In this document: piece after piece, positions 7,051 to 58,600 of the stretch | How positions within the stretch are numbered: position 1 is the stretch's first letter | How the letters are laid out: every line of letters starts with the position of its first letter | DNA from: Octopus bimaculoides | Lineage: Eukaryota | Direction: 5' to 3' | Length of the DNA: 64,000 nt | NCBI RefSeq assembly: GCF_001194135.2 | Contig: NC_068981.1 | Coordinates: 155,007,043-155,071,042, forward strand | Position numbers and translations under genes: made by a program | Notes under the pieces: model-generated | The model's database searches: none | What the model was told of the DNA's origin: nothing | What the model saw: only the letters and a program-made list of their open reading frames with translations

Positions 7051-7567
7051 CATCATAAATATATCATCATCATTGTTTAACATCCATATTCCATGCAGGT
7101 ATGCATAGGACAGTCTAATAGAAAACTGGTGAGCTGCAGGGCTACATTGAAGGGTTTAAGTTGAACAAACTAATCCAAGTATGTTTGTGCATGTGTATGT
7201 GAATCTAAACGATGATACGACTGTCTATATTCTGTGCAACTTCCCTCTACATCCCCTACACTCTTTGAAAACATACATAGCTTTGGTCATAATTTGCTAT
7301 TTTTGTCATAGCATTTCTAAAGAGAGTTGATTGATTACCAAACATCTATATATATTATCAATCATCGGACATACTCAGCATATGCTTTGTTAGTTAAAAC
7401 ACTTGAAATTCATAGACACAAGAGACAACTCAACTTGAATCGAATTCAGGAGTGACGGATACTGACATTTCACCATTTTGACTTGAATCACCAGTCTATG
7501 ACTATATATAAGTAGTGTCATAACTATTTGCTGATGTGCCATTTGCTATATTATATATACATATATA

Positions 7568-8952: not shown

Positions 8953-10229
8953 CACAGACATGCAGGAAATAAATAAAACATATTTAATTTTCAAAATTTC
9001 TGATCTAAGCATCTTCATATGTTTTCAGCAGTGTACAATTTTCAATGTAATTATTCTTTTTCATTCCAGGTGCCATTATATTAAACATTTGTGAAGAGTA
9101 GCCATCCACACACAAAATATTCAGCAGAACTGTCAGATTTTCAAAGAGGTTGTGTTGGTGGGCAATCTGAGGCTGGTCTTAGCCAACAAAAAATTGCCGA
9201 AAATCTTCAAATTCCTCTTTCTACTGTTAATTGAATTATAGTGCAATTCAAAAGCCAAGGAAAAGAATCAACAGATTCTCGTCCCAGCTGACCTGGGCCC
9301 TCGGGAAGGAAGCTTCGCTGTTTGAAGAGAATTGTGGAAAGCAAACCCCATTTGAAGGCTTCTGACATTGCAAAACAGCTAGAAGTTAGTCCAAGAATGT
9401 GTGTTACATATTTGCATAAGTTTGGGTATTATAGACGAGCAGTTAGAAGAAAGCCTTTCCTTCAACCAATTAATATCATGAAAAAAAAGAAATGGGCTAA
9501 AGAGATGTCAGAAAAATCCAGTTCATTTTGGGATAGAGTGATTTTCTCAGATGAATCCAGATTTGCATTCTTTTCAAACAGTGGACATGTTTGGGTCTGG
9601 AGGCTTCCAAATCAAGAATTTGATTTGAAACGACTCCAACCAACTGTAAAATATAGCAGTATCTCTGTAATGGTATGGGAAGCTGTTACCAGCAATGGTC
9701 GTTCTGAGCTGATCGAATGTGTTGGAACCATAAACTCTGAAAAATACATCGAAATACTTAAGCAAGGACTACTTCCAACATATTCACATGATAACATAAC
9801 AAAAAATGAGTTTTTATTCATGGAAGATGGGGTTCCATGCCACACAGCAAAAAGGAATCAACAATGGCTGACTGAAAATAGAATCATAAAGCTTCCTTGG
9901 CCGAGCCAATCTCCTGACATGAACCCAATTGAAAATCTTTGGAGCATACTAGATAGAGCTTTATGAAAAACTCAACAGAAACCTAAATCTAAAGATGAAT
10001 TGTTTCGATTGTTGTGCGAAAAGTGGGCAGAAATTCCACAAGAGACAATTACAAAGCTCATCAGTTCAATGCCAAAAAGAGATTCTGAATTAAAAACTGC
10101 AAAGGGAATATCAACTAAATACTAAAATATGTAGTCCTACCTATCAATTACTTTTCAATTGTTTACTTTGCATATTAAATAAAAGATTTTGAAAATTAAA
10201 GGTGTCTATTTACTTCCTGCATGTCTGTG
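8953..10229 (+). mobile_element. Tc1-family DNA transposon (DD34E), near full length
   Basis: Imperfect TIRs of about 47 bp starting CACAGACATGCAGGAA; TA on the left, CA on the right; transposase inside. Confidence 0.93.
9091..10125 (+). pseudogene. Tc1 transposase pseudogene, 344 codons, three in-frame TGA
   Basis: One frame: [11 protein letters not shown]...[22 protein letters not shown](34 aa)E in DMNPIENLW, C-terminal SMPKR...AKGISTKY. Stops at 9232, 9289, 9964; presumed start reads GTG. Confidence 0.92.
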
Positions 10230-34600: not shown

Positions 34601-37600
34601 CTCATCCGATATCCTTTATTGTTAACTTGTGTTTCCTAGATAATTTTAAACAATTTGATACTTTCCTATAATTTCAATGTGAATGTAAAAAATGTAAAAA
34701 TTTGGGTTAAAAATTGAAATAATATTAATAATGATTTGTTAAATGCTTTTATTTCTTTTCATTTTAGATTCGGGTTGATAATTTCGACTACATTGGTGTT
34801 GGTAATTCAACAAATAAAAAAGATTCCCAGGCAAATGCTGCTAGGGATTTTGTCCAGTTCTTAGTTCGGCAGGGACAGGTCCAACAATCAGAAGTGCCTA
34901 CTGTAAGTACATATCTTCAGTCTTTTAGAAAACTTTAAAAAATTTTTTTTTTTAATTAACAATATTTGCATCTTAAATATGTCAAGTCTACATTAATATT
35001 CTATTATTGTTAGCATTCTTAGATATGTAGAGTATCTTCACAATTCATTAGGTTGTTTACTAACATCCATCTTCCATGCAGGCATGAATAGGACTGTTGA
35101 CAAGAGCTGGCCAGGTAGAAGACTACCCTAGGCTACTGTGTCTGTTTTGCAGAGTTTTTATGGCTGGATGCCCTTCCTAACACCAACCACTTTGCAGAGT
35201 GGATTGAGTGTTTTTCATGTGACACCAATGTGTTTATAAATAATAATAAATTAATGTCGATTAACATTTAAGAATTTTCACTGCAAGGTCTTCATGTCGA
35301 CTTCAGAATAGCTTTTAAATAGTTCCGTTTAATATATATGAAGAAACTGTTAACTGGAATATATTATGCATTGCTATTTTGTATTTCACCACTTCAAAAT
35401 TGTTATTGTAGGATAAATTAATAGCCATGTGCATTATTCATGATATAAACTAGAAAACATTTAAAAATGAATTTTTAGCTAAAACCATGAATCACAAATA
35501 ATATGTAATAGTAAAGTACAGTTTTATCTATTCCCTTTTGCATTCTTTTATCTTCCAGTTAACTGTTGGCATGGGTGCTGGGACAGCAGAAACTGTGTCT
35601 GGAAATGACACACCTGCAGATGATATGACTGATTCTGGAATATCTTCTGGTGGCTGTAAGTTAATTCTTTCTATACATTTCGCTTTTAGAAAAAACAGTT
35701 TGTTAATGAAGAATTTACTTTAAACAAATATCTTCTTTCTTGATAGCTTTCCCTGGATTAGACGCTAACAGAGATATTCCTGCTTATCAAAGGGGCCCAC
35801 CAATGAGTTATTTGGACCGACTTGCAGAAAAAAGGAAATTGGAAGAAGTAATTATTTTTTCATCATTTTTTCTTGATTTTTGCTGTCAATGTCTACATTA
35901 TTTATTTACCATATTTAGTTGAAGTATTGAGTGAAGAGGTGGTGGTGGTGGACTTGTTTCATAATTGTTCTCTGTTAAGTTTAGGGCAAGTGCAGACTTT
36001 TTTTTTTTTTGGAGTTAAGAAGTTTAAATTTGCGACTACATAGTGCCAGGTTCAATCTGTTATGCTGTATCTTATAGAAATACATTCTACCATAGCCTTG
36101 GGCTGATCAATCCTTGTGAGTGAAATTTGGTAGATGGAAACTGTGGAAATATATCTGAAGGATAAATCCTGTTAGTACCACTGTCTGACCTTTGGGTGCC
36201 TTTAGCAGGTTTGACTGTTTTAAGAATTCAGCACAGTCAGCATTGGTAGCCCTAAAAATGCTGTGGGTTTTATCCTATCTTCTCTGACCAAGCCTAAAAA
36301 AAAAAAAAAAGATGCAAATGTTGTGTGGGCTTTGTTTCCTTTTGTATTTGAATAAAATGGAAGACATAGATCATATTCATATCGACATAATAACTTGAAA
36401 GTAGCTTTTAATGTGGTTATTTATTATAATTAATAGGAAGAAAATATTTCCATGTACAAGAACTTCCAATAATGCTTGGCAAAGAAGAATGGATCATTGA
36501 TAGATAACTATTTCATTTTATAGTAGTCCTGTAGCAATGAAGCAAGAACTAAATGTTATGATATCTTTTGTTACCATATTTCTGTTTAAATACACTTTTG
36601 TTTCAATTAACTCTTAGTAAAAAATTAAATAATTTTGCCATTATTAAGTTGGTTTTTTGTAACTTAGATTTTAACAGAAAGTTTTAATTTAGGTCATCTT
36701 AACCTTTTTGACACTAACCCATCTAAGACTGCCCTCTGGTTCTATATGATGCAAACTCCTCGTTAAAAGTGATCTAAATTAAAAACTTTCAAAATGGACT
36801 GTTAATTTATGTTCCAAATACCAGCATAATAATGATAGTTATTTTTCTGTTCTTCGTTAATTTCAGAATTAATTGAAACAATAGAACTATAGGTTTATCT
36901 TTGATGGGTTGGTATGAAAAGGGTTTAAAAGCCTTTTATAAAAATTAGAATTTTAATGTTATTTTAGAGATGTCAGAAACTAAATATTTAGGAGGTTATA
37001 TACTGACACGGCGCTAGTTGCACAAGCTGATACTCGTTGTTATTTAGAACCAGATTAACTCTGATCAAAAGCCTTTCTAAGTGTGAATATCACTTTCCCC
37101 CCCCCCCTCTGCTCAAGCATATTGACTATAGAACAATGTTGTCTAATATGTCCTTCCTGTTTTTAAGACAGTAAAGTGAGATCTAGCAGGTTGAGCAACC
37201 ACGTAAAGAATCTTTTTTTATTTGCTCATAATGATATTGGACAAGTTTAGATTGTTGATATTTGCAATATCTTTTTCTAAAGATGGGCACATTGCAGTTA
37301 GCTGGAATCTGTGATGGAACTAGTAGATCTTTTTGCATGGAATATAGCACAAATGAACTCAATCTCAGTTTTCGGTGACATGACACTACTAATAATAAAC
37401 TTAATTTACATATGTTAGATATAATTAAGGTATTAGATTTCTCATTACTATTCTGATTTTATTTCTTCAGTCAGAAGATCTTGACTTGAATGCTAGTATT
37501 CACGGCAACTGGACACTGGAAAATGCTAAAAGCAGACTCCATCAATTTCTGCAGCAAAATAAAATACAAGCTGATTATAAATATTCTATGATAGGTCCAG

Positions 37601-40600
37601 ATCATAATCGGTAAGTTAAAATGTTGGATATTGTTTCCTTGTGTTGAATCTCTCTTGACTCCTGAAAATTTTATTACTTTTTCATGAAATTTCGGGTTTT
37701 AAAGTTCAAAGTTCTTAATTCTTAAACAGGTTTTATTTTATGTGTAAACTACAAACTTAGTATAACTTTCTCTACATTGGAATATATTTACATATATTAT
37801 ATAGTAGCTACAAGTCATTCACTAGTATGAGTAAACAGTTAAATGTAATGCTTATTTATAAAAGCAGTAATTTAGTTATTTATAGTAGTTAGTCTTATAT
37901 TTTTTCTATCTGATGAAAATGTAAAACAAAACAGTTGTACTTTTTTCATGTGTTCTCAATTATATAGATATATTTAAAAACTATTAACTTTGTTTTAATT
38001 TTCTCTCTTATAATTACCATTAGCAAATGTTAAGAAATATTAAAATAAACGAAGCTTACCATCACTACAAAATTTGCTCTAATTATGCAACTGTAATTTC
38101 TGGTTTGACTTAGAATTACATTCGTATTATTTTATTTTTAAGTTCCCATATCTCAATGTTTAAAATATTGAGGAATACTATCTTTTGCCAATAATTACTT
38201 TTTTGTTGAGATTTAAGACCAACTCTGTCAAAAAATTCTTTATATCTCCTATCTGTTGGTTTGTAGTCTATACTAGATTAATATTTAGTGTTTATTTTGT
38301 AATTAGTTAATTGGATTTTTTCATGTTTTTTAATAGAAATAATTGTAAAATATTCCTCTGATCATTCTTTGGAATTTTTATTGGTGATTTCTTGTAATGG
38401 AATTTTTAATTTTTTTAAATTTTTTTTTTGTATAAATAAAATATTTTCTTTTAAATGTTTTCAATAAAGTTTGTTTCAGGAAACAATATTTATCTACAAT
38501 GCTTGGGTCTGCTAAAAGAAGATGCATTATCTGCATGAAATATTTGTGAATGTTTGTGTCATTTTGTGTGTTAAGATTATTTAAATTACAAAAAAGTTTA
38601 TGCTCAGTAAGATAGTGCCTTAAGGTACTGCTAATTCTCTAGTTAACTATTTGACTTGTAATTTTGATCAGATTATTTAGGTATAGTTACTGAAAAACAC
38701 TATATTTCATTTAGGAATTTTATTCTTGGCTTTTTTTTTTTTAACTCAATAGCAACTTAATACTTCTGATACGATTGACTTGCTGTTGATGTTTGTTTAA
38801 TCTGTTTATTATATATTTTGTAACAAATTATATTTGTAGTTTTAAAAAGTAAGGCCTAAAACTTAGTTTCTAAAAATGGTGATTAAATTAGTTATAATAG
38901 TTGAATGAATTTAAAAAGAAAAATTTTTTGATCAAAGATTCTCTATTTGAAAGATTGAAAGTTCAGTTTTTAAAAAAAAATTTTCAAAGCTTAGACTAAT
39001 TAAGGTTTTCTTTTATAATTGCTTAAATTTGCAAAATATTTCACCATTAGTCAATTTTGCTTTACAGCTTAAGTAAACAGTTATGAAAAACTGAAAACAA
39101 AACAATTTTATGTTCTACATGTTTGTATAGGGGGTTGGCATAGGTGTAAAGGAATAGAAAGAAAATTTTAAAGAACTGTTATGTGATTACAAATATGAAG
39201 TGGTTCCACTGAATCAGTGTATCAACACTGGTTTCAAATGTGTATAGATTCTTGCACATATAGTTTGACTGTCCTATCTACTTTTCAAAAATGTAATCAG
39301 TTCTGATGAATTTGAATATAATTATTTTCTCTTTTAAAGACATCCCTAAACTAATACATTACAGCCTTTATGTTTATCTTTTACTCATATTCTATTAGTC
39401 TCCTTTATTTTGGTCATCATTAGCAATTACCTTCACACACTTGTGTTAACACTACATCTTGAATAAAATTAACTTGGTGTCTTTTGTTATTGTCTAAGAC
39501 AGGAGTGTTATAATTATAGAATATTAAATTATCACTACTGTAAAAGTAGTGTTAATTTTATGTTCTTTTATATCTGTAAATTAGTGTTAAATTCTCTTGT
39601 TCCAGTAGACTCCTTGTTAAACATTAAATTGATATTACATCCTAGTAACTCAGATGTTTGTATTTTTTAAAGATTTTTTACATTGTTGTTGTTGTTTGTT
39701 CAACTGGTTTAATTGGCTTGTTTCAATACATGCTTTTTTTAATACTATAAATGAATAGATTTAGATTATTTATTCTCTAGCTGTTTGGTAGGTTACAACA
39801 TCTCTAACTTTGGTAAGAAGCATGTCTAATTGTTGTTAGTGATGCTGTTAGTTTTGCTGTTTACACCTTGGTGCTGCTGTGCTGTCTGACCTGATATTTG
39901 CTAGACAACGCCTGCTTGCGTGGCTTTTTTCTATTAAAATGTAATAGAACTGAAATGACTACAGCTCAAATAGCTAAAATGTAATTCGACAGATTTATTG
40001 TTTGTTATACTCCTCTTTATTCATGTTGATAATAAACCAATATGAAGCATTTAATTTATTAAATGTATAGAATATACAAGTGAAAGTTTGTATACTGATA
40101 GGAATAGTAGGCTTTCTGACATTTTCTCAGAATTCTTCTGGCTTTCAGTGTTGCTATAATTTCTATAATTTAACGGGTTTAATAATGTAAGAAAGAAAGG
40201 TATTTTATTCTATTTATTCTATATAATTCAGTATTAACTTTCATTATTTAATAAGATTACAACCATGATTTGCCAGAATGATGGATCAGTGGACTAGCTT
40301 TCTTGGTAGGTGATACTTTAAAGCATTTTGGGTATAATAATGGGTAAAATGTTTTTTTTTTAATGTTGTAATAAATGTTAATTGTAATTTAAGTTGGTAA
40401 TTTACATATGATATGGAATAGTCAAGCCAGTTACTGGTATTGTAATGTAAATCAAAATAGGAATATTTTTTCATAAAGATACATTCTCAATTAATATTAA
40501 TAAGAAAGAGAACATATTGTGTTGCAATTTCCGGTATTAATGTTGACTGAGAACTATATTTCAGTACTTTTGTCACATATATTTGAAACTTTATTACTAC

Positions 40601-43600
40601 TTTAGAAAAAAAATTATACCAAATATAACTATGAAAGCAAGAAAAAATTTTTGAAATGTCAAAAAGGAATTTATTCTGTGTAATGTGAGCTTCCATAGAT
40701 AGATGACATAGTGTAATTATTTCACTCATTAAAGCTAAGTGTTGTGTTTTTGTAAATCAAGGAAAGTAATTTATTTATTAGCAAAATTTAGGAGACATCA
40801 TGAGAATTAGATCATAGAAATATGTTCAGTTTTCATTCTTGATCTTCAGAAATTAATTCTGTTAAGAAAATGTCCATGTTCAGTATGAGGGGAGAATAGA
40901 CGGTAGCAAGGCAATATTTTGCATGTTGTGCACCTTGAATGTTTGAGTAAATGAATTCAGTTATTTTTATAGTAAAAGTCCAAGTAAAACTAAAAATATA
41001 ATTCAAGGAGTATCCAGGGCTTGAGTTAAAAAAAACTACTAATCTTCATTCAAATGTTAAGTTACATAACCTTTGCATGCTGAAAGTATTTTGTTGTATA
41101 AGAATGAAAATTAAGGACTTTCAGTAACTGAAGAACAAGAAGAAATATAAACATATATACACACAGGTAGATAATTTTAATTTTAAAACAGCTTTTGGTT
41201 CTATAAAGTAAAACTGCCAATGTTAGCATGTTCACATTTAATTTTGTACCTTTCACCATAATCTTATATGAGCTTTGCTTCATGGTGAAAAGTTATTTTA
41301 TTTAATTACTAAAAATTCCTGATTATTTTCAAATTGAAATACATAGTGTATGTCAATGACAAATAAGGTAATGAGAGGGTTAAAAAAAGACAACTGAAAA
41401 TGACTGCCTGTTCTAAATGAGAGTTTATTATACAAGTGAAAGTTGCTAAAATGTTTTACTACTGCCTGGTTTGGTCGCGTGACTGAGTAACTGTCTGAGA
41501 AAATAGCTAGTGTTTGCTTTTAGTGGTAATTATACTAAAGGTAAGTCATGGAATATTTGAAAAATATGACTTAAAAAGTTTGCGTTAAGAATGGAATAAG
41601 TAGGATGTGGTTGTATGACCATTTTATAAAAGTATTTTAAATAATTGTTTCTTTTTTCAAGCTAGATCTTATTCCACAAAATGAGATTATTTGTTTTAAT
41701 TTAAGACAAACTGATTTTACATTGACTAGTTATTTTCATTTCAATTTTTAATTTAAAAAAAAAAATTAACATCAACTTCTTGCATTCAATTTGAAAACAA
41801 AAATGCTATATGGATATGTTTAACACCTTTTTTTTTTTAATCAATTCTTTAAAAGCATAGTTTCTAATATATTTTCTTTCCCTCTCGATTCCCTCTTTCT
41901 ATGGTTCTATCAATGCAGTGAGTTTGTCTTTACAGTACTCTTAGGTTGCACAGCTACAAGTGCCTGGACTTGCAACAACAATATTTAATAATCTGTGGCA
42001 CTGAAAGACTGATTTCTTTTTCAGTCGTTATGCCACTGAAACCGACGACAGTATCATTCTTATTAGGTTTGTCCCACAACATTTATCAATTTGGATTATT
42101 TAGTAATCATAGCCAAAGCTCATAAAAGTAATCTGCTGAAAATTTTATTCTGTTTTATTTTTATATGAAAATATTCTGTTTTCTATTTCTTATACTTTTC
42201 TATTTTCTATTTAGACATTTATTTTTCCTAAAATGTTTTTTTTTTTAATGTTTATTATATGCTACTCTGTATACCAAGAACAATATAGAAAATATGTAAT
42301 TGTATATGTTTATAGACTTTAAGAAAACATGCATTCAAATCTAACTCATATTTGTTGCTCATAGGTGCTGTTTTATTTTTCACTATTTGTTCTAATTAAA
42401 TGGTATATTTAAATATTTTCAATGTGTATTAGAAACTTTAAGGTTTTAGTAGTTTCAAAATGAGTTCATGCTATATTTAAACATAAAAGTTGATCATCTT
42501 AAGGATTTTAACTCATGAAGTTTGAACAGTGCCATTAGGAAGTTTATGCTGGTTTTGCACATAAATATTGTGGTGCCACTTAATCATAGTAACAAGAATG
42601 ATAATTATTTCTTTTGGCAAAATACAAGGCCATGTTTGTGCTCAATGTAATTCATTCAATTTCTTGCCTGTATTTGTTAAACCCATTAAAATTCTAATAA
42701 ATTCAAATATTCAGGTACCATATTACATTGGTATTGTTTCCTATCCTTCATGGGCATAAATCCTGAGATTCTTAAGAAAGGAGGAAATTAAATGTTTTAA
42801 AACATTCAAGAATTGAAATCGAGTCACAGGCTCAGCTGGCCAAAAATTTAACTATACTCAATGATTCTGGCCAAATGATAATGACTATGATGACATGAGA
42901 ACAATGGTGCTGCTGTTTCAAAATTGCAGTGCTACCCTGTAAATAGAATTAAGGAATATATATAAAAAACGAATTTCAAGAATTAATTATTTGAAATTCT
43001 AAATTCATTACGTTGATACGTAATAGCTGCTCTTGATCATCTTCCTCTATATTATTGTTTAAATGTTGGGTGTTTACTTAGTAATTGTATCTGCTTTCAA
43101 TTTTTTTCTGTCATTAGTTGATTGAAAAGTTTGTGGTATATTCTGTATCATTTTTACTGGCCTTTCTGCATGAAAATAATTTCAGTTTGGTAAAGATAAT
43201 CTACATTTTAGCACATAGTGCCATCAGCTGAATATGTCCTGTTACTCACTTTTGATAAAACACTAATATTAATCTTCAAATTAGAAATTGACACATTAGA
43301 TTCTATGTCCTGATTTTTTTTTTTTTTACTTTGGTTAACATATCTACAGCAGATTGTTGGAGCTTTGAGTAAAAGAAACAACCAATACATTGTCTGATAT
43401 TTGTTGATAATGTTATAATTGTCTACATTTGTGTTTGTTATGTTAGTGGCAAGTATCTGTCAGATGTATTATTTTTTTAAAAATAAGTATTGCATAATAA
43501 GTATAACTTATTTTTCTGTTGCTGCTAATGCCAGTTATTAGCATTTCCATTTAGTAAGTAGAACATGATTATATCAAGTCTTACCATTGTAATGTTAAAA

Positions 43601-46600
43601 CAATTGTTATATTATCTTGTAATAAATTAAGAATAGGAAAGTTAAATTTCTTTCAGTAGACCTACCTGTTGTTAGCTTCCTTAAAAATTGGAATAATTAC
43701 AATAAAATGCCATTATATATACTTACAGATATTTCTGTTTTATAAACAGTATTTAAGGTATTCATTTTTTATGAAATTTGGTCTTGTTGGTTGTAAAATA
43801 AAAACTTTTAAAGCTGCATCTTGGTTTCAACAGAACTTTTGTTAAGTTTGCAAAAAAAAAACAAAAAAACTGGAAATCAGTTGGGTAAAAATAAAATTTG
43901 TCATTTAATTTTTTTTTTTTTTTTCATATCAGCTATTTAAAATGAGATAGCTATATTTATTGTAGGTCCTTGTGAAGTTTTATGAATAAGCAGTAATAAT
44001 AGAAATAAATAGCTTAATGTATTGGTGTAATAACCGTTGTTGGTTGGTAGATTTTGAAGTCTTATACTATTCTATGATGTATGAAGATGCTATCAATCTG
44101 TTATTATTGACTTGACAAATAAATTACTCTCTTTATGAAGTGATTTCTGGAAAAAAAAAAAAAAAAACATTATTGTATTACATGGAAGGGATTGACTTTG
44201 ATAATTGGAACAGGTAATTGTCCTTTATCCAGTAATTTTTGCAAGTGTCTCTTGAAAATATTGTGTAGATTAATGCAATACTCATACAAAGGATATGCAG
44301 TTGTACAAACCACACACACATACACAAAATAGCTGATATACAGAGCAACAGAGTTGTCTAGTTTTTCTCTATTACTGTGTGTTCCAGATGCAAAAGATCT
44401 TTTGAATGGCGAAGCATTATGAGACTCAACCAACTTGGGAAAATGAACATAAAATTTATGTCTGTGTGTTTGTATTTAATTTACATATGAGCACAAAACC
44501 ATGATGTTGTCTCATAACATACTTTTGTGTAGCAACTAGACATTTTGATTAAAATTTCCTGTTTCTGCAGGTAAATAAATAATAGAAAGCTGTGGAACAA
44601 TGAAAAATAGAAAATTATCAACAAAATAAGATGTTTAATAGTATGAGGGGAAAAGAACTGAGTATGCATGGTATCCAATTTTATAAAATATTTTGTGCAT
44701 ACTTATTTTTAATAGTCCTTTCCTTATCCTTATATTTTTAAACACCTTGTTTTGTCTGTAATTTTCTGTTTTTGCCTTGTTACTTTTATGTTATTATAGT
44801 TGATTATTAGTGTGGATATGACAACCAAAAAATGAAATTTTAATTTGGCCATTGAGTTATTGATTTCATTTGATTTGTATTTCAACTACAACTCTAACAA
44901 AATAAATTGTTGATAACAAATGAGTATGCATCTGAAATATTAAAGATAGTCCTATTATAGTTTGGGGAATGCTTCGAACAACACCACATTGCTTTCTTAC
45001 ATATTCCATTTAAAATTAATATAATTACTTGAAATATTTGGTTATGGAACAAATGAAAGTAATAAGCATTCAGGTTACAAGAAATGGAGGATTTGGCAGG
45101 GCTTTTCCATTGTGCTTAACTGAATTTCACATTTTATATTAATGTAGATTTTTGAAAACAGGATAATGCATGCAAATTCAGAGTTCTGGCAGTGTAAATA
45201 AATTCAAATACTATTATAGGTATTAACTAAAACAGGTATTAAATAGTGCTTGTTTTATTGGCTATGCATGACTAGGATGACGTTATCAATTTTTATAATT
45301 TCAATGTTTTCATAGCCATTTTTTTAGTTATTTATTGTGACCTTTGTTTGCTATTTGTTTAAAAGGATTTGACCTTATTTGGTATTTTCATCTCAACTAA
45401 AATAAGATTTATCTGTTGAAAATTGACAAAGAAATCTAAAAACATTAACCAAGTGAGTGGTATCACTCTCATGGTAATGGATGTTCATTTGTTAATAAGT
45501 CTGATACTGTCGTTGTTTGACCCTTGTCCTTTTACCATGCAACTTAACTTACCATCATGGCGTTTAACCCTGAAAATTTCATTGCAAGAAACAGCTTTCT
45601 ACATGAAACATTTGAAGTGTGCAGCTCTTATTCTATAACATTAAGCTGGCATTGTGCATGCTGTGGTTTCCAGACATAATTTAATTCCCTTAATGCTATT
45701 TTAAGTCTCAAAAATTTTCCTTTAATTATTGAAATGATTTGAGCTGTTATAAGAATGTCTTAAGATTTGTTCCAGTAATCACTTAATGATTAGAAATTCA
45801 TAAAGTTATTTTGTATCAATTCTTTGTGTCTGGAATATGGTTCAATATCTGTTTAGTAAATCTATGAATGATGATTAACTATACTATATATTATACTTTA
45901 CCATTGTGTTTTCCAGAATAAAAGGAGATTGTTTTATGCTACATTATCTGTAATATCAACAGATCTGTCATATTAGATCTATTTATATTAAAGATAAATT
46001 CTCTCTCAAAAAAAAAAAAAACCCTTTTTTTGGTGATTTGTAAAAGGATAAAGGAATGTATATTGCAGCTTAAAAGAAAAAAATCTGTAGAGTTTGAAGT
46101 GCATTCTTCTGAGATTTTTTTTTTATGTTGAGTTGATTTCTTGCCATAAAATTTAATTTTATCTTAGTCAATTTTCTTACCTACAGAAAATCTAAGATAA
46201 AAGAAAAAAAATTGTTCAATTATTTGTATGCACTAAATGCATACATAAATATTAAATATTTAAGATGGTAAAGTTGCAATTCTTCACTGATTGTTTGTCC
46301 TGTATTCCTGCTGTAGTGGGATGGATTTTTTATGTCCCCCACTAGAGCAGTAAAGGGCTTTAGAAGGGTTAATATATTTGTTTGTCTGTCATGCAGCAGG
46401 CACTCATAAAGTTGTTGCAGTCGTTGCCTCTCGTTCCTCCTCAACAGAATCTTACCATTGTGGCACTTGTATGCTGTGCAACCCAACTGCGTGTCTTCCT
46501 TGCTAGTTAAAGACAGCCCTGTATCTTCTCAGGTAAGTTATTTCCTGCTCTGCAGAAAACTGCAGCCCTTTTATTTCAGCATTATAGTGTACTACAAAGA

Positions 46601-49600
46601 AAACCAGCTGGAAAAAGAATAAAATAATGCAGTCATATTTATATATATTCTCTTCTGCAAAGATTCTTACTGTTTGAAAATGTTCTTCTATCACAGCAGT
46701 ACAGTCACTTAGACAATTCCACTACTTTTTTTTTTTCCGCCCCTTCTTTGTATTAGCTGATATTAAATATTTTATTTTCAAATCACAAAGATGGATAGCT
46801 CTGAAAAGAAGCATTTATCACAATAATACCTTCTATTGAAATAACTGTTTTTAATTCATTTTTATCATCTTTTTTTTTCTATTTTTTTAAGTCTGAAGTT
46901 AGTTTCATCTAGTTACTTTTTAAAAGAATTAATATTGCTTTCATCTAAACGTTGACAAAAACTGAAATATTTATTGGGCTGTTACACCTGCTTTGGTGAA
47001 GTTGAATGTTGGAAGTGAGTTTTAAAAGTGAAATTGTAATTTCTCCTCCCTTATGCTTTAGATGTAGTCTATTGATATGCTAAATTCTAACATTAATTGT
47101 ATCTTTAGGAGATCAAATATAAAGATCTTTGTTTAAGTACTCTGACAGTTTATGCAAAGGACTCAGCAGGTTTTTGGATAAACTATTATTGCAGCATTAA
47201 TATCAGTCTTACTAGAAATATTCTATTGCTATTTGGAGCAATAATTTTGATTTTTCATCTTTATATATATCATACAACTTTTCAAAATTTAAGTACAAGA
47301 AATTTCTTCTTAGACTCCTTAAATTACAAGTCATTATAAACATTTTCATTTAGGAACCAGCCTTGAAACATTTTGAACGGTTTCTATAAACATAAATTTG
47401 TCACTAAAATACATCAGTTTTATATTTGTTACGGTTTATCATTAACTTTATTCAACAGTCTTATTTCACTTCCTCCAAACAAACTACTGAAAATATTGTA
47501 TGTTTAATCAGTTGGTCTCAAGCAGATGACATGTGTGTTTTGCTTGTATGTATGTATTTATGTGAGTGAGTGAAGTGTATAACTGGTGGAATACATTGTT
47601 ATGAGGAGTTTTTAAATTACTAACCTAATCTCAAATTGTACAAAGAAACATTAGAATTATTTCACTAAGTAAGAGTAAAATATTGTTTAAGGACCCTGCA
47701 AATGGAATGGTCAATTTATTCTGGTGTCCACCTGTTAGCTTGATAAACTTAGATTTAAATATTGATGAAATAATTCTTTGAAATAAGGTAAATATTATTT
47801 AGTTTGTTTTTCTGCAACAAAATGCAAAATAATTTGAAAATATCTTTTAATGATGCCTAGGATTTTTTTAAATATGTAAATGGTTTTCATTCTGTTTCAT
47901 TTTAAATGAAGAGATGGAAAATGCATTTAAAGCTCCTAGTTATTGAATACTTGAGAAGTAATGTTTCCTATATCAGTTCTTGTGTAATCACAAATGTTAT
48001 TCTTTACTGCCTCCACCAATAATTTTTACTCTGAACCCTAAAGTAAGCCACGGTGTGATCATTCAACCAGCTAGAAATATCCCCTATATAACATTCTACC
48101 TAAGTAATGAAAGGACACATTAGATAATGTACCCCAAGATAACTTTGATATAGTTGGCATTAGGAATAATATAACGCTATTAAGAGGTTTTGCTCTAAAT
48201 ATTTGATGACTTGCTCGTCTAGAAAAATACCATTCAAAGTAATGAATCTAAGAGCCTGGCTACTTGGCTCATTTTAGGAAAATGACGTTTGAAATCCTTT
48301 CTGTAACATAATTATTTTATAGTAGAATATTATCTTTTTATTTTTTATTTTATTTCTGGCAATAGTCCAGATGAAAAGAGTTGATGTAACATATTAGTGC
48401 TTATTAGGAGAAAAATCAATTCACTTGAAGCGCGTTTTATATTTGATTTTTTTTTTTAGCTATTTTTGCATTAAGTGTTGTAAGAATTATTTGATGGCTA
48501 GGTTGTAGCCGAATAGTAACTACTCAATTACTGGTTTCGATAATTGTTAAGTTTACGAGGTTGTAATGAAATTTGATTAGTGCTTATATTTTTAAATAAA
48601 TGCTTTCAGTTGTTATTTATTAATCATCTCTAATCAAGCAGACTGCTTATGGTAGTGGTTTGATAGCAACAATGGCTAAACATATTAGGTCTACTCTTTT
48701 TTAGTGATAGGGATTGCTGTGTGAATGACTTCTTTGCCTTCAGACTGAAAGAAAGGTGTGGAAGACAAAGCTTTTAGAGTTCTCATTTCATAGCATTACG
48801 ACATACAAATACATAATAATGTATTGTCATTCCATTTGTTCTCTAATGCTAAACAAAGTACTTATTTATTGACTAGATAGATTGAAGACTATTTAATTTG
48901 ACCTGGTATGTGTTGTTTTTGGTCTAAGCAGGTTTTAACGATTTATAAATATTCAATCTTTAGTATCAAGGGCGATAAATATTAGAAATACCAAGAGGAG
49001 TTTTCTCCCTAACTCATAGGATTGGGTCATCCTATAAATAATGTGGCTTTTTCAATTGCATGAAAAGTTGGAGGGGGACAGGATAAACTACCTGCATCAA
49101 CTTGCTATAAAAGCAAGTAGTAATTTTACCTTGTCCTTATTCTTAGTGTAAATTTTGAAGAGCTGTTCGATTTTAACAGTTACTTTTTTAAAGCTATAAT
49201 GGAAGTGACAAAGGTGCATATTCAGCCTATTTTGCTTTATGAGTTCAATAAAGTTAACGCACCAGAAAGTGCAGGGAATATTAATGCAGTATATGGGGAT
49301 TGAACAATAAGTGTAAGCCAGTGTCAATGGTGCTTCCAGAAATTCAGAACCAGAAACTACAGCCTGGCAGATGAGCCTCGTCCTGGAAAATCTGTGGAGT
49401 TTGATGAGGATATCCTGCAAATCTTGGAACAAAATCCTATCATAACTGTTGAGGAACTAGCAGAGTAGCTTGAATTTGGTCGTTCAACCACTGATCAACA
49501 TCTGTGTGTCATTGGAAGAATCAGCAAATTGGATCAGTGGGTTCCTCACAAACTTTCCGAGTCTAATCACATGGAGAGACTGAATGTATGCTCTTCTTTG

Positions 49601-52600
49601 CTGTCATGTCTCACAAATGAACCTTTTTTGGACCAAATAGTGGACAGGTGACAAGTACTGAAAACAGTGGGAAAAGGAGGAACACCAGCACCCCAGGCTA
49701 AAATTCTTCACCCACATAAGGTGTTATCTGTTTGGTGGGATATGAAAGGTTTAGTCCACCTTGAACTTTTAAACCCAGACCAAATGATAACAAAGGACAT
49801 GTACTGTAAGCAGCTTGAGTCGGCGCTAGAAGTAAAATGACCATCTTTGGTTCCAAGATGAAAAGTGAATGCTTGGTCACATACAGCAAGGATGACATTC
49901 CAAAGGCTGGAGCAATTTGAATGGGGAACTATGCCCCACCCACCATATTCGCCAGATATTACTTCATCTGATTATCATTTATTCCGCAGTCTTCAAAACC
50001 ATTTGGCTGGAAAAAATATGAATTCTGTAGATGAGGTCAGAACAGTACTGGGGGAGTATTTTTCGTCATGGACAAGTGAATTTTGGAAGAGCATTGTAAA
50101 AAATGAAGGAGAGTATATTTTAGAGTAAAAAAAGAATATTATCTTAATTTTGAAAAGTAAAAGAAAACCACATTATTTATGGAGAGCCTATGTATTTTAC
50201 TGTTTTTAATGTGTGCTTTGGGGAAAAGAAGACTATATATTAAGTGTGGTATGGATCTATACATCAGGAACCTAGCACATTAAATTTACTAGAATTTTTT
50301 TTTTTGTTTTTACTGGCCCCTGACAATAGATGGTGGGGTGTTGTCTTGTGTGTGTATGTACCTGGTATATGAAGCTGTAGAGAGCATCTGCATTTAGTGC
50401 TATGAATTGGTTTAGTGAATAGTCTCTGTGTTTGAATGTTTTGATACGCTTTAGATTTTTAAGAGAAAATATAGAAAGGCTGGTCTTATTTAAACTCCAA
50501 TCTTTGGTGTGAGAGTGCAGAACTTTTAGCACTTGGAAGTGTAATCAAGTTTATGGATTTGTACAGCTTTCAGAACCAATGTTTTGGTGCAGTCCTCTGA
50601 GATCTTCCAGATTTTAGTCACTGCTTTTTCATGTTTTTATTTGTCCATTTGATACATGGAAGCAATTTAGGACTGTTGTATTGCTTCCATTTCATCAGTG
50701 AAGTTGGTATTATAAAGTGCCTTTCTAGAAGAGGAATTTTATTTAAAAACTAAGGACAAGTATCTTTTGACTGGACCAAAATTGGTGTTTTCTAAATATT
50801 CTCAAGATTCCATCCTGCTAGTAGTTTGCAAATTGTCATAGCATTTCATTAAAATAATCCTGTAATAGTAAACGTTACTTATAATTTGTATGTGTCACAT
50901 GGATTCTGATTAGGTATTGCATTACCTTGTACATCTACATTGCGATGTGCTATAAGGCTCATAAGGAATGTGTTGTTTCTATCAAATCAATGTCTTTCTG
51001 TAGGTTTTTGACACCATTGAGACTCTTAATTACTATTGATATTTTAATGTTATTGTTTGTAAAGATGGTAGTTCTGAGTAAGATTTAAATAAACTATTAT
51101 TCAAGAAAGAATTCAAAAACGATATAATCAGTGATTTACTTGCTTTAAAGATAGGTCAGCCAAACCTTTTTATTTTTCCTTTAGCATCAATGTGGCCTTT
51201 TGTTTTATTTTTTATGTAGAAAATTTTAAATTCTATAAACCCTTTTGAAGACTTGTCCATGTTAGCAGTGTTTTTGAATCCTTTAAATTTTCATAATCAA
51301 AACCATACTCATTCTAAAATAACATTTTAATGTGTGTATGTATATGCACATATGTCTATGGGTGTGGTGTTTGTATGTAAATTGTTGTGTGTGTGTGTGT
51401 ATGTGTACTTGCATGTGTACAGGTGGCCCATAAATGGCTTAATATATAATGTTATAGTAATGCAATATATATATATATATANNNNNNNNNNNNNNNNNNN
51501 NNNNNNNNNNNNNNNNNNNNNNNNNNNNNNNNNNNNNNNNNNNNNNNNNNNNNNNNNNNNNNNNNNNNNNNNNNNNNNNNNNNNNNNNNNNNNNNNNNNN
51601 NNNNNNNNNNNNNNNNNNNNNNNNNNNNNNNNATATATATTCATGCATTCTTGCTTTCATTGTTCTTGTTATATTAAATTTGGATCTTGGATAGATCTTT
51701 TTCTTTTGTTATTAACATTATTTTATTGTTCTTTTGTAGGAGCTTCATTGCCGAGATGAAAATCTATGTCAAATCTATTGGGAAGCGTAAGTATTTTAAA
51801 AGAATTAAAAATGTTTCTTTTATTAATGTTATATATTCTTATGTTTTATAGACTGACTCAAAATGTAACAACACTATACAATTTTTTTCCAAAATGTCTA
51901 AGCAGCTAAAATCTTTAATGACCATTTGATACAAAAAGAAAACCATTCTCATGTATGATTATTTATAACTACTTCATAACTTTCATTTGATTTTCTTTCT
52001 CTCTCTCTCATGTTAGATGTATCATCACGAGAGCATGGTTCAAATAAACAAGTGGCTTCCAAATCATGTGCTTTGTCTTTGGTACGCCAACTCTATCACA
52101 TGAATGTTATTGAAGCTTACACCGGTTTGAAGAAAAAGAAAGATGCTGATAAGGTATGTTCTTAAGGAATTTTATCACTATAGTAAAGCCTTTCCTTGAG
52201 TGCATTTTGGAATAATTATGTGGAGAGTTGTAGTTGTACCACTGGTGTGTGAACAGTACCTATATATTATGTATCACATATTCTTTTGGTTCTTGCATCA
52301 TAGAACATCTATGGGAAAAATTTCAAGATGGTGCGAGTGATTACTTATAATTGTCTCTTTCAATGTCGTTATTGCTTGCAAACCCAACATACACTGTTGT
52401 GCATTGTCACAGAGAGCCAACAGAATGCTTTAAGTCTTGATAAAATACCTTTATTTCATGTTTTTATAAAGTAATCATTACACTCAAAACTATTTGTAAA
52501 TATTTTTATCATTGGGTGTAAACAAAGCAATGCACTGTGGGATGGTGGTAAAAAAAAGGGAAGGATTTGAAATGCATGTGTAGATGTTTACTAATTCAAG

Positions 52601-55600
52601 TAGGGGCAGGTCAAGTGAAATTGTTTGAATTTGAATGTTGTTTGTGGAAGAAATGGGAGTCCCATGGTGTTGTACAAGCTCACAGTTGGAAAAAAAAAAT
52701 AATGGTGGGAATGACATAGAGAATTGAATGATGGACTACAGGCTTAAGATATCTGTACTTATTTTGTCAATGAATGCTGACCAGTTTCTCATATATATAT
52801 ATATATATATATAACCAATTTCGATCACTGGCACCCGTGCCACAGTAAAGTGATTCTAAAATCCTCGTAGGAAAAGCAGTAATGTTGGTTTTAAGAAGGC
52901 AAAAAGCAATGAGTTCTAGTTAAGAGATGCTGGCACTTCTGAATATCAAAATAGTCCAGTGTTGTGACACAGGCTGTGTTCATTGGAGTTGTATGATGCT
53001 TGTGTATAAACAGTGATAATGCATGGTAGTGAGACATTGAAACTCTAAGCAGGGAATGTGCATAGGTTGGAGAGGAATGAAGCGAACATGATCTGCTGGA
53101 TATAGAATGTCTGTGTATGACATGAACTGATAAAAAAACTGGGTATAAAAGTAATCAGTTGTAGTGTGCAAATGAGATGGTTACACTATTATATAGAGGT
53201 AATGTGTAATGAATTATTCACGTGGGTGAATAAGTACCAGGAGATGTGTGGGAGAGGAAGACGGGGACAGAAGTGGTAGAGGTTGATATCCGGATACTCA
53301 ATCATACAAAGGTGATGGCAAAGGAATGTGACAAGTGATGGGATACCATGTTAAGGGCCTATCCAGCTCATGCAAGTATAGTAAAAATGAACTTAAAATG
53401 TTAATTGTGTTATAATCTACTAGTTCTGTGTGTATATTGTGTGGTTGAGAATTTAATGATAATAATACAGGTATTTGAACCAAGTGTGCTTTTACTTCAT
53501 ATCATTTACAGATACCACCATTTGAAGTTTCCATTAGTCCTGAATTGGAAACTAGTCTGGATGAAGCTTTGCATGCATGGAATATCGAGCCTATTCAAGT
53601 AGTAAGTTGTTTATTTATTATTAAGTAATAAATTTACGGTGTTTTAACTTGATGCCTTTTATATAACATTTTCTCATTAACTATTTAATTTCTATCTACA
53701 TTTTAAAGCCTGCTGAACTTTCCCCGGAGCCATTCTCACTAGTAACTCATACTCAACTGGATGAATTTGTTCCTGCACCTAAACGTCCTCAGCCAGGTGT
53801 GGTTTCTTGGTGTCCACCACAACCCAACTGGAACCCTTGGACAAATTGTAACATCGATGAAGGTCCTTTGGCGCATGTGAGTAAAACATTTTATTGTGTG
53901 TGCAAGAGAGTGCCATGTGTCTCCAAAATAAAAGAATATAAGTTATGATATGAAAGGAATGGCAGAAAGCTGAATGTAGTGCGTGGAATTCTTGGACTTC
54001 TTGTTCTTGTGGAAATAACCTCTTTACTGGCATGTCTCTGTTTTTTTTTTAACTATTATATATACATAAAAGGAACTGCTTTGCCTGAGCAGGTTTTTCA
54101 ACGAAGGGTTTGATCTTTATGTAATTGTAAATCCAAAAAGATGCATTTGTAAAATTGGTTGTAAAGAATTAAAATATAACCTAAAAATGTATAATATAGT
54201 GATGCAGTATTAACTGCCTCTTGGATGTTGTTTACTGTCAAGCTAACTCTGATCAGGTGAATCCAGTTGAGATCATCCTGTCATTTTATGAGTATCTAGG
54301 ACTAAGGCTTGAAAGTTATTGGTTGGTTATATAGATGAAATGGACTGCTTCCTAATTCTATGTTCAGATGCTTTCTGTATTGACTTCACATTCCAATTTT
54401 CTATAATAGGTAATGTAAAACACTAAACTTTTTTTTCACCGATAAAAGTTTACTTATTACCATTAATATAAAAAAAAAGTATGTTGAAACAATAGATCCT
54501 TCCAAAAATTGCCTTTCTTTTCGTCAAACTGGAGTCAATAAAAGTACCTGTCAATTTTTAGGGGCAGATTTAATTAACTCCTCCTGTCTATTCATATGAC
54601 TTTGCATCAGTTAGAATTAATTATTATTATTTATTTTCTGTGATTATTATTGTTATTTAGGCCTCAATGGAACAAATCAGTCAGGATGTGTACCGGTCAC
54701 TAGAAGAACAGAGAGCCAATGATAGAGATCTTCAGGCTGTAAGTCCTCATTGCTTAATTGTATATGTTACTATATTTTTATGTCTGAGACCGTCTATATC
54801 TTTATTGCTAATAATTTTGGCAATAAAGTTGTATGTTAAATAATATTTATTTTGAAAATATTAATAGTAGATACATTTTCTTTGAATTAAGTTTTAGTTC
54901 AGTTATTTTGAGCAATGATACCTTTTTTGGTTCATGTTGCCATGAATCAATTTAAGCAGAATCAAAACCAATGAACTTGTGTTAGTGTAGCATTTTAATT
55001 TTACTATCATATTTTCCATACTCTTCATATTTCCTTGTGAGAGTAATACATGTGAATATTTTTTCCATATTGTAACAGTAGTATCCAGCATGAGGAAAGA
55101 ATTAGAAAATTATTATTTTAGCAGGTGTTTGTTGAATGAAGCATGGATGATCTATTCCAGTATGACTAAAATTAAATGTCAATATACCATTATGATATTT
55201 TCTTTTTTTTTTATTTTAAACATCTTTCATTGAATTTTTTCTGTTTTCAGATGCTCCATGATCGAAGCAAGTTACCTATCAATCAATCTAGAGATCATAT
55301 TGTACACGTTATCAAAACTTCCCCGGTTGTTCTCATAAGAGGAGAAACTGGATGCGGTAAAACAACACAGGTAATTGACTTTGTTGTTTTATTTGTGAAA
55401 GAAATTAAAAAATTACTTGCAAAATGTGCGAGTAAAAGTAAATATGCAGGTTTAAGTGCTCCTATTGCTCACATGATTAAATCACAAGTCAAACTTAAAA
55501 GATAGATACTGAAAGATGAATGATAGTCTTTTTAGATATTGTGTCTTAAAAAATAAAAAAAAATAAGGTTGTGGCTGAAAGGCTTTTGAATGGGTCAGAC

Positions 55601-58600
55601 AATGAATATTTGAAAATTTCATATGTAAATCTAAATTTTTATTACCTTAACCTTTTCGTTACTATATTTCTGACCAAAATACACCCTTCATGAGTTTCAA
55701 TTAAATTCTAAAATAATCATGAATTTAGACTAGTTTCATTAAACAACTGTAACTTTTTTACTTATCAACATATGCTTTCCTGGCATATACTATCAGAAGC
55801 GTACCCTTCCTTTATACTCCACCATGCCCTCATCAACAGGTAAGTATCTCTCAGGGTTGTAAAATATTTTATATGCATTTTGAAAGCAGTCGATGAGGGG
55901 TCTTATTTTAAATAAGAGATCAAAGTTTGGTTCTCCATGTATTGTGGCACTGCTAGTATCCCTCACATGTCGATACTGGTTCAGTTTCACAAATCATATT
56001 CAGATCATAATACTGGAAACATACTGATTGCCAAAAGGTTCCTGATTGTTCCAGTAATTTGTAATCCTGGGTAACTGTCTAATAACCCATAAAAATATTT
56101 ATGGTAAAAAAATGCCCGTATTTCTTGTGGGAAACCACAAGCTATCTTTTTTTCCAGCTTCCTTACATTCTGCGTAACGGTTTGTTTCTTCAGTGATCAC
56201 TTCAAACAAGTATGCTGGAAAAAATAAGAAGGAAATGTCTAATGGTTTCGCTTCTTGAGAAAGACTATAAGTAGACCCTGTCTCCTCAGAAAAATTGTTA
56301 ATAAAAACATTTTTAAAGTTTTTACTCCATTCTGGTGTAAAATCGTCCTCGCTATCGCTGCTTTCAGTTTCTTCAGAATTGCTGCTTTTGGACTCCGATA
56401 CACAAATATACGATTCATTTTCGTTCACCATGTGCTTTTGTACCTCATTCATTCTTTTTCTCGATATCTCCATATCTTCCATTGAAAAGCCTTCAAATTT
56501 GGAATCACTGCTTGATAGCATGAAACTCCTCTTCATCTTCAAAGTTTTAAAAAATCAGCACCGTAAAAATGTGGCAAAAAATCTTTCAAAATTCACCGAG
56601 TTCAAATATCGCGCCAAACAATGTTGGATACAATAGCTCAAGTATTTACAAAGTGAAATCACGTTTCTCACGAATATACTAACAAGATTTGTGTTCAAAT
56701 TTACATTTAAATAACTCTTGGGTACTCACGGCTGGTTATGGCCGGGTTGGTCTTATGAACCAAAATGTTTTTTAGCCGGCTACAGCCAGGCTTGTATCAA
56801 AAGGGTTAACTGTGAAAATCCTGTTGTTTTTTCTCTATATTAATCTCCCAATCCTGTTAGGAACTAGAGATTTTAATGAAATGCAGTTAGTTGAGTATAA
56901 AAATCATAAAAATATAACTGTTGCATGTATTCAGACAAAATTTACTGATATGGTATAATGATGATTGGTGTACATTGTGAATGATTTTTTTTTTTTTTTT
57001 TTTTTTTTGGTAATTTTTACCTGTTGTCATATCACATTCACGTACAAAGGAAAGTTGAATACAGTTAAGTTGATTACATATAAGTGTTTTCACACAATTT
57101 TGATTCCTGAGCATTGAGTTTACAGTCACAGAGCTGAATTTGTACCTCAGTTGGTCTCTAACTTGGAAACTGCACAACTCCTAAAATCATGTTGAAGAGC
57201 TCAATTACCACTGAGGCCTTGCTCCTGCATAAAATTATAAAATTTCCCAGTGAAGATGTATCACTCATAAAATGCACATTTTACATGATTGATAACTTTG
57301 TGGCTGAAAACAGTTTACATATTTTTTCTTTTCTTTTTATGCTGCTTGACTATAATGATTGAAGCTTTTAAATCTGATGTTGGTTTAAATCTTTCTATTT
57401 TTAGGTCCCTCAGTTTATTTTGGACGGCATGGTTGCAGAAGGCAAGGGTGCTGACTGTAATATAATTGTGACTCAGGTAAAACTCTTAAAATACTTAAAA
57501 GTTAGTTTGCCATGTAATAGCAAAAATTATTAGTTAGACATTTAAAAGCAAAAAAAAAAGAGAGAGAGAGAAAGAAAAAATAAATTATTCTATTCATTTG
57601 TGAACATCAACACTTATCTTTGACTGTTTTCTGTTAGGTGCATTGTTAGTTTAATAAGGGTCACTCTTTGCCTGTGTACAAGTTAATCTGTGATAGTCTG
57701 AATTTGTACATATTAGTTAATATTTCAGTGTCTCTCTTACTTTTAGTTTAAGTCATCTTAACAGCAACTATTTTTAAACATTTAGCTTAAAGTATAAAGT
57801 TATGAGTTTTTAATAATTTTTACTGTATTTTTCTTTTCTTAATTGCTACAATTTAATGACTTGCAAGGTTCAACACTTAACCTGTGCTACAAGATAGCAA
57901 AAATTCCACTGTTGTTTTTGCAAATTATTCCTAAATTTTCATAATACTTCAAATGCATTAAAGAAAATAACAACAAAAAAAACACACATCCTGAATTCCA
58001 ACTTTTATGACTAATTAATTCCATCACTTTGAATATGCCACTTCCCTTAACACAGAATATTAAGCCTGTAGTCAACTGATACATTCATTCATATTAGGTT
58101 CCCATTAATCTCTGAAAAAAAACATCTTTCCATTATTGATTTAACAAATGAGTGTATTTGTGGATTGTTCAGTATGTATTAGTAATATCTGTTGTAAATT
58201 ACAGCATTGAGAAATACTGCTTGTAAATAATTAGTCACTAAAATATTTCAGTTAGTCTTCAATCTCAGATTCTGTTCTGTAATATGGTATCATTATATAT
58301 AGGGGTCATATTGTAGTTGACTGACTCACAGTGTCTTTACTAAGCTATTGTCTTCATCCAGCCTAGAAGAATCAGTGCCGTATCCATCGCCGAAAGGGTC
58401 GCTATGGAAAGGAATGAGAACTTGGGGCTGAGTACTGGCTACAGTGTCAGATTTGAAAGTGTTCTACCTCGGCCCTATGCAGCTATTCTCTATTGTACAT
58501 TAGGTATGTACCTCCAGAAAGTTCTTTACTATTTACGTTTTTTTTTAATGAACAAAATGCTCTGTCTTATTCTGTTCATAATGTAATCTTCTCAGATCTA

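Follow-up and report, generated by a model that had tools for sequence, protein, structure and literature searches.

The DHX9 (RNA helicase A) gene of Octopus bimaculoides lies on the plus strand of a 64,000-nt stretch of contig NC_068981.1 (hereafter the window, position 1 being its first letter), where this cephalopod gene extends from about 25.5 kb to past 64 kb, and the intron that splits its second double-stranded RNA-binding domain (dsRBD2) contains a candidate poison exon ending at a consensus-perfect 5′ splice site after position 46532. We put it at slightly under an even chance that this candidate is a splice-competent cassette that is actually spliced in, yielding an isoform targeted by nonsense-mediated decay (NMD), and such an isoform would be expected to be degraded. 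That its inclusion is a regulated switch rather than splicing noise is doubtful. In decapodiform cephalopods, a frameshifting cassette is truly spliced into DHX9 in the orthologous intron, a solid result that is independent of the fate of the octopus exon. The probabilities that we attach to this reading and to its rivals overlap and do not sum to one.

The exon map of the gene was built by spliced alignment to a cephalopod DHX9 transcript, contig L001, which yielded 19 exon seeds, with 17-18 splice sites placed confidently; the open reading frame from 25561 encodes dsRBD1 in translation. The constitutive exons that surround the candidate, and the intron that hosts it, are the following:

37471..37610, plus strand: upstream constitutive exon (exon 5), the first half of dsRBD2, from the spliced alignment to L001 and translation.
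37611-51739, plus strand: host intron of 14.1 kb, splitting dsRBD2.
51740..51786, plus strand: downstream constitutive exon 6, 47 nt, read out of frame once the candidate is included.
52017..52153, plus strand: next constitutive exon (exon 7), which holds the premature stop of the 85- and 112-nt forms described below, from the spliced alignment.

Exon 5 terminates in ..GPDHN plus CG, in phase 2, with the donor TCG^GTAAGT (here and below ^ marks a splice junction). In human DHX9, a poison exon known as 6A is found in transcript NR_033302 (Fidaleo et al., 2015, PMC4741636; Palombo et al., 2020, PMC7072589), and the primer designed for the exon 6-6A junction, GTCCTGATCACAACAG^GTGG, reads ..P D H N (R)^ (PMC7072589, suppl. 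Table 2). Octopus exon 5 has ..CCAGATCATAATCG^ as its last letters, which likewise read ..P D H N (R)^ and match this primer over ..GATCATAATCG^, and the vertebrate transcripts P0002 and P0013 read ..GPDHNRSF(T/I)AE.. where normal splicing continues. Because codon and phase are the same, human DHX9 intron 6 and the octopus host intron are positional orthologues. P0013, a vertebrate DHX9 transcript from the Logan assemblies, is itself out of frame after ..QLGRRI, which fits the loss of one T from a T run and is probably a sequencing or assembly error and not a splice variant. Near its 3′ end the octopus intron contains an assembly gap of 151 N (51482-51632), located just 108 nt ahead of exon 6 between TG and TA microsatellites.

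The candidate lies within a small island that is richer in GC than the surrounding intron, as the initial annotation of this DNA had stated, and comes in several forms that share one donor:

46280..46560, plus strand: GC-rich island, 44% GC versus 29% in the intron, single-copy in the window.
46369..46373, plus strand: putative branch point TTAAT (yUnAy, branch A at 46372), read from the sequence.
46374..46399, plus strand: T-rich polypyrimidine tract and NAGNAG acceptor catgcag^cag^, from a position weight matrix (PWM) scan.
46402..46406, plus strand: branch-like CTCAT, the sole good yUnAy upstream of the acceptor at 46447.
46407..46409, plus strand: in-frame TAA within the 136- and 133-nt forms, which translate as ..DHNR(R)HS followed by the stop.
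46421..46532, plus strand: 112-nt form, with its AG at 46419-46420, a weak acceptor (1.8 bits), and the frameshift and stop of the 85-nt form.
46427..46447, plus strand: C-rich tract and acceptor ...cctcctcaacag^ of the 85-nt form, 6.4 bits in the PWM.
46448..46532, plus strand: 85-nt candidate cassette, 46% GC, +1 frameshift, from sequence and translation.
46530..46538, plus strand: donor CAG^GTAAGT, cut between 46532 and 46533, 9/9 consensus, 13.2 bits.
52045..52047, plus strand: TAA stop of the 85- and 112-nt forms, the first in frame, in exon 7 after the shifted exon 6.

The initial annotation had singled out the 85-nt form, and the sequence details of its description were all reproduced: the acceptor, gcctctcgttcctcctcaacag, which ends at 46447, the length of 85 nt and the donor CAG^GTAAGT, together with the frameshift, the read-through peptide and the stop at 52045-52047, downstream of which at least 17 exon junctions lie within the window alone. 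The alternative acceptor at 46420, proposed to give a 112-nt exon with the same shift and the same stop, was confirmed as well. The 85-nt form is, nevertheless, probably not the best-formed version of the exon, the 136/133-nt form appearing better built. With its NAGNAG acceptor, the exon can begin at 46397 (7.5 bits, 136 nt) or 46400 (5.5 bits, 133 nt), and 24 nt separate the upstream TTAAT motif from the AG at 46395-46396, with no other AG in that interval. The CTCAT motif near 46402, which had been assigned to the 85-nt form, is present, but the AGs at 46411-46412 and 46419-46420 fall between it and the acceptor at 46447. Since the 3′ splice site is chosen by scanning for AG downstream of the branch point, these two AGs should compete with the AG at 46447, a point that counts against the 85-nt form. 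At the level of sequence, then, usable 3′ and 5′ splice sites are present, and all forms place a premature stop far upstream of the last exon junction.

In the model that we favour, the perfect U1-complementary donor at 46532^46533 would define a cassette within the island (46.28-46.56 kb), for which the likeliest 3′ splice site would be the NAGNAG at 46396/46399, giving a 136/133-nt exon with the TAA at 46407-46409, and the acceptors at 46447 (85 nt) and 46420 (112 nt) would serve as minor alternatives. In any form, the reading frame would be cut about 230 codons in, inside dsRBD2 and before any of the helicase core. The truncated mRNA would then be removed by NMD, and the level of inclusion would set the amount of productive DHX9 mRNA, as with human exon 6A. 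Premature stops of this kind had been described as established triggers of NMD dependent on the exon junction complex, which holds for mammals but for cephalopods is presumed. A stop at about codon 230 of a message of about 1,250 codons should trigger NMD under the long-3′-untranslated-region model too, and because the stop leaves more than 3 kb of 3′ untranslated region, NMD is plausible under either model.

The strength of the splice sites was assessed with PWMs built from the gene's own 17 donors and 18 acceptors, in which the positions of the pyrimidine tract were pooled. With 13.2 bits the candidate donor is the top of the 852 GTs in the intron and surpasses all 17 real donors. The 9/9 donor motif, CAGGTAAGT, occurs twice on the plus strand of the window (at 46530 and 55837) and never on the minus strand, for an expected count of about 0.19 per strand by our own base-composition estimate. 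The acceptors for the starts at 46397 and 46448 both score inside the range of real ones. When the 11,821 AG-GT pairs of the intron were ordered as pseudo-exons by combined PWM score, two of the first four turned out to be forms of the candidate:

43933-44213, plus strand: rank 1, 281 nt, 23.6 bits.
46397-46532, plus strand: rank 2, 136 nt, 20.7 bits, with the same donor as the 85-nt form.
46892-47014, plus strand: rank 3, 123 nt, 20.3 bits.
46448-46532, plus strand: rank 4, 85 nt, 19.6 bits.

The 85-nt form had been called the strongest candidate, which is nearly so, since it ranks fourth and the longer form second. The further description of its splice sites as near-ideal holds for the donor but not for the acceptor at 46447, which at 6.4 bits falls in about the lower third of the real acceptors (leave-one-out range 3.4-10.3) and has a C-rich tract, whereas those of the real acceptors in the gene are T-rich. 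Among the top scorers, the candidate is exon-like in composition, with 46-48% GC (the real DHX9 exons have 34-49%), whereas 46892-47014 has 30% and 43933-44213 has 27%. Moreover, just two small GC islands in these 14 kb lack a transposase match, and the intron's best donor borders one of them. When run blind on the intron of the decapodiform gene, the same PWM ranks the verified cassette first among 1,921 AG-GT pairs (20.5 bits), so that the score has some predictive value, as judged from this one case.

The decapodiform cassette came to light through a protein search, which returned a sequence, P0020, that reads ..GPDHNR and then KRLNQHLSWSCVTLVGRIYWTLLKGAS followed by a stop. Its contig, L001 (Logan assembly, run ERR10659120, 3,397 nt), represents a DHX9 mRNA that is spliced and nearly complete and shares about 75-80% identity with the octopus DHX9 exons. 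Precisely where exon 5 (..AATCG) should join exon 6 (GAGCTTCAT..), it contains 74 extra nt, which shift the frame and lead to a TAG stop at 432-434. The genomic contigs L002-L005 (runs SRR273628xx) and L008 (SRR14864936), which represent two related taxa, carry the cassette as an 83-nt exon:

L001 350-423 (74 nt): decapodiform cassette in the transcript.
L002 2870-2952 and L008 536-618 (83 nt): the same cassette in genomic contigs.

Its genomic splice sites are canonical (..tttacatttt(t/c)tgatcag^CAAAAG...GTTA(G/A)AAG^gtgagtg), and the cassette, separated by about 1.9 kb from exon 5 and by about 280 nt from exon 6, has a higher GC content (43% vs. 31%) than the 2.3-kb intron that contains it. 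In L002 the cassette itself holds the stop, a TAA, whereas in L008 and L001 the stop falls just inside exon 6. L002 and L008 are about 90-95% identical in the neighbouring introns too, and their conservation was therefore rejected as proof of constraint, the taxa being too close: the agreement shows presence of the cassette, not selection on it. No paper describing a cephalopod DHX9 cassette in this intron was turned up by full-text literature searches. In the same transcript, a distal 5′ splice site of the preceding linker exon is used (L001 24-94, L002 291-361), with the donor CTAG^GTAATG instead of GCAGG^GTCATC, which adds 71 nt and shifts the frame; this is a second unproductive splice choice in contig L001.

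Taken together, the reading of the octopus candidate as a spliced cassette is favoured because its donor tops the intron and its acceptors for starts 46397 and 46448 are within the real range, because it alone among the top pseudo-exons has exon-like GC, the verified decapodiform cassette being likewise GC-rich for its intron, because human 6A and the L001 cassette occupy this same intron, and because the island shows none of the marks of a known repeat, an RNA gene or a protein-coding fragment of a transposable element. Several observations weigh against it. The PWMs have a training set of just 17-18 sites and a predictive value calibrated on one case. About 12 distinct pseudo-exons in the intron exceed the lower quartile of real sites, and two of them, 43933-44213 and 46892-47014, score comparably or better than the candidate, both with in-frame stops. 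No octopus DHX9 transcript was present in the protein and contig collections searched, an absence that is uninformative either way, and neither reading-frame searches nor exact-DNA scans turned up an orthologous octopod intron that covers the island. The distance to the downstream exon 6 is 5.2 kb for the octopus candidate, in its 14-kb intron, and about 280 nt for the decapodiform cassette, and scores of both local and global alignments between the two fall within shuffle distributions. Similarity to about 80 nt of primer-derived sequence from human 6A and intron 6 did not rise above background. Finally, from the window alone, the island may have originated from a non-coding transposable element.

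The main rival is an inert pseudo-exon, according to which the motifs of the candidate are a chance constellation, or one that is silenced, so that inclusion does not rise above noise and DHX9 output is independent of it. We regard this as a serious possibility that also stays somewhat below an even chance. Strong splice sites alone are not beyond chance in this DNA: besides the comparable pseudo-exons of the same intron, the same thresholds are passed by 106 AG-GT pairs on the plus strand of the window and by 47 on the minus strand, and the candidate had been picked as the best of many. The 85-nt form in particular has AGs in the exclusion zone of its mediocre acceptor, and the collections searched yielded neither a transcript nor an orthologue. 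What speaks against mere chance is the rarity of the 9/9 donor and its place at the edge of an island of about 280 nt, which by position makes up about 2% of the 14-kb intron, as well as the existence of a well-formed upstream acceptor with a branch site and the fact that the same scoring picks the true cassette in the decapodiform intron. If the octopus exon is unused, it would be an ordinary strong pseudo-exon.

At the protein level, the searches behind these negative results covered 5.8 billion proteins and 1.8 billion cluster representatives. A chimeric query made of the island reading frames and the junction peptide gave no protein match, a 102-aa frame of the island gave only spurious matches among the 1.8 billion cluster representatives (a tandem-repeat protein and a bacterial protein), and a 1,172-aa six-frame query over 45.9-47.35 kb gave none. 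Of two exact-DNA scans of metagenome contigs, one was empty and the other returned two hits that agree just over the 21-mer itself and are due to chance. The only other octopod contig found, L009, spans 51640-53104, outside the island, and is about 90% identical to the window in aligned columns (about 82% with gaps over a longer match). Among more distant genomes, L012, which is cephalopod-like, and L013 contain the intron and show no detectable homologue of either cassette; L010 and L011 were rejected for comparison, their gene structure not being cephalopod-like.

As a sub-case, it is also conceivable, if unlikely, that octopus has a poison exon in this intron but that it is a different one, namely 46892-47014, 43933-44213 or an exon hidden in the assembly gap at 51482-51632. 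The two pseudo-exons are as follows:

46892-47014, plus strand: 123 nt, 360 nt downstream of the candidate; T-rich acceptor of 11.2 bits, donor GAA^GTGAGT, in-frame TGA at 46953-46955, 30% GC.
43933-44213, plus strand: 281 nt, after a T16 run; in-frame TGA at 43943-43945, 27% GC.

With 20.3 and 23.6 bits, respectively, against 19.6-20.7 bits for the candidate, and with their in-frame stops, both would qualify by score, but both are intron-like in GC. With very lenient gap penalties, the region 46850-47100 can be aligned to the decapodiform cassette over its 3′ half, its donor and the flank downstream, with a score that is reached by one of 300 shuffles; however, this alignment is lost under ordinary scoring, and other windows of the intron outrank it. 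In fact, Smith-Waterman comparisons against shuffles and intron-window backgrounds detected nothing robust between the decapodiform cassette and the octopus intron, and the cassette with its flanks had no match in the window by blastn-short, by blastn with word size 7 or by nhmmer with a three-species profile. The gap is the place where the decapodiform cassette would sit if its spacing to exon 6 were conserved, since that cassette is about 280 nt upstream of exon 6 and the gap 108-258 nt upstream; against this, all that L009 shows where the gap ends on its 3′ side is a TA-rich repeat, and neither nhmmer nor blastn found anything in the window with the decapodiform block.

Improbable, finally, is that the island derives as a fragment from a non-coding transposable element, or is some other relic, and that any splicing is an incidental, species-specific exonisation, an origin that would be compatible with a cassette as well as with a pseudo-exon and would not bar use as a poison exon. 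The intron is indeed rich in transposable elements: a mariner-type transposase remnant (49667-50128, plus strand; Pfam Transposase_1, E = 9.5e-14, with a match at 49667-49840) lies in a GC-rich stretch at 49261-49911, the intron's largest, which it explains, and families resembling short interspersed elements occur elsewhere in the window. The core of the candidate (46462-46486) also has an inverted match of 24/25 nt at 41941-41964, in the intron's only other small GC island, with a nested inverted match of 22/26 between 45493-45518 and 42040-42065, and these pairs could be remnants of two copies in opposite orientation. However, an inverted match this strong is nothing exceptional: among 67 other 85-nt windows of the intron, at least 8 score higher. 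No further copy is present in the 64 kb, and no protein relative was found in the 5.8 billion proteins or 1.8 billion cluster representatives. The proposal that the island might be a transposable-element fragment thus found no support from repeat families in the 64-kb window, nor from Rfam, tRNA-like or Pfam matches (the last in its open frames), but the 25-nt inverted match remains.

That inverted match was also considered as a long-range RNA duplex. The predicted pairing of 46462-46486 with 41941-41964 (-42 kcal/mol) beats all 400 dinucleotide shuffles; as a special feature it was rejected in view of the same higher-scoring intron windows. Likewise rejected was an antisense U1 small nuclear RNA pseudogene as source of the perfect donor, for which ACTTACCTG on the minus strand would correspond to the U1 5′ end: a search of 45800-47200 against Rfam brought up no U1 even at E <= 10, and in the whole window nothing passed the gathering thresholds.

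Other elements were noted in the window. Upstream of DHX9, a Tc1/mariner-like open reading frame encodes a DDE_3 transposase (9322-9966, plus strand). A piggyBac-like DDE_Tnp_1_7 fragment (55793-55990 and 56099-56542, minus strand) is located in a downstream DHX9 intron and adjoins the only other CAGGTAAGT of the window, at 55837. An inverted repeat pair of 261 nt (8061-8321 and 60299-60559), 96% complementary and with a common open reading frame that has no Pfam match, has one copy inside a DHX9 intron and looks like a young dispersed element. The direct repeat pair 4342-4469 and 7219-7347 is exact or near-exact with its copies 2,877 nt apart, and the duplication of 3251-3314 as 3325-3388 around a run of 10 N (3315-3324) is probably an assembly artefact.

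DHX9 dosage bears on the handling of double-stranded RNA, on R-loops, on transposon-derived double-stranded RNA and on RNA editing, which in cephalopods is exceptional in scale. If octopus controls DHX9 by way of this exon, unproductive splicing of DHX9 would be an ancient or repeatedly evolved control point that can be tested in a non-vertebrate. A broader proposition, that the dsRBD2-splitting intron of DHX9 hosts unproductive cassettes of unrelated sequence in humans, decapodiforms and octopus alike, we consider distinctly unlikely; were it true, it would imply either a DHX9 dosage-control module ancestral to bilaterians that has undergone complete sequence turnover or repeated recruitment of the same intron. 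It can further be speculated that DHX9, being itself a double-stranded RNA helicase, could gate its own poison exon by unwinding the 46462-46486/41941-41964 duplex. Poison exons in genes of RNA-binding proteins, and the one in human DHX9, are already known, and the octopus candidate is at best another.

Among the closest systems for comparison is the decapodiform cassette, with which the octopus candidate shares the intron, a frameshift or in-exon stop, a GC content above that of the intron, a similar size (74-83 nt in decapodiforms, 85-136 nt in octopus) and a combined score of about 20 bits by the same PWM. The two differ in support, the decapodiform cassette being backed by a transcript and by AG/GT sites in two further taxa, and in the shift, which is +2 in decapodiforms and +1 in octopus. 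The octopus candidate was rejected as an orthologue of this cassette, with no detectable sequence homology and a different position relative to exon 6.

Human exon 6A resides in the same gene and the same intron, after ..GPDHN(R) and before SFIAEM. It holds a UAA stop; UPF1 knock-down stabilises its isoform, slow RNA polymerase II induces its inclusion, and hnRNPM and SRSF3 act as repressors (Fidaleo et al., 2015, PMC4741636; Palombo et al., 2020, PMC7072589). As in 6A, the stop of the octopus 136/133-nt forms is internal to the exon, and the predicted outcome is again the loss of productive mRNA via NMD. The octopus exon had been presented as the counterpart of 6A, which is borne out for the intron and the predicted consequence but not for sequence homology, none being seen against the fragments of about 80 nt; at this evolutionary distance, non-coding homology would not be expected to be detectable. 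For 6A, inclusion, UPF1 dependence and regulation have been shown experimentally, unlike for the octopus candidate.

In genes of SR proteins and hnRNPs, poison exons likewise couple unproductive splicing to NMD. These exons typically lie in ultraconserved sequence and their autoregulation has been demonstrated. What the octopus candidate shares with them is the architecture, a premature-stop cassette placed early in the coding sequence of an RNA-binding-protein gene, for which a homeostatic role would be predicted.

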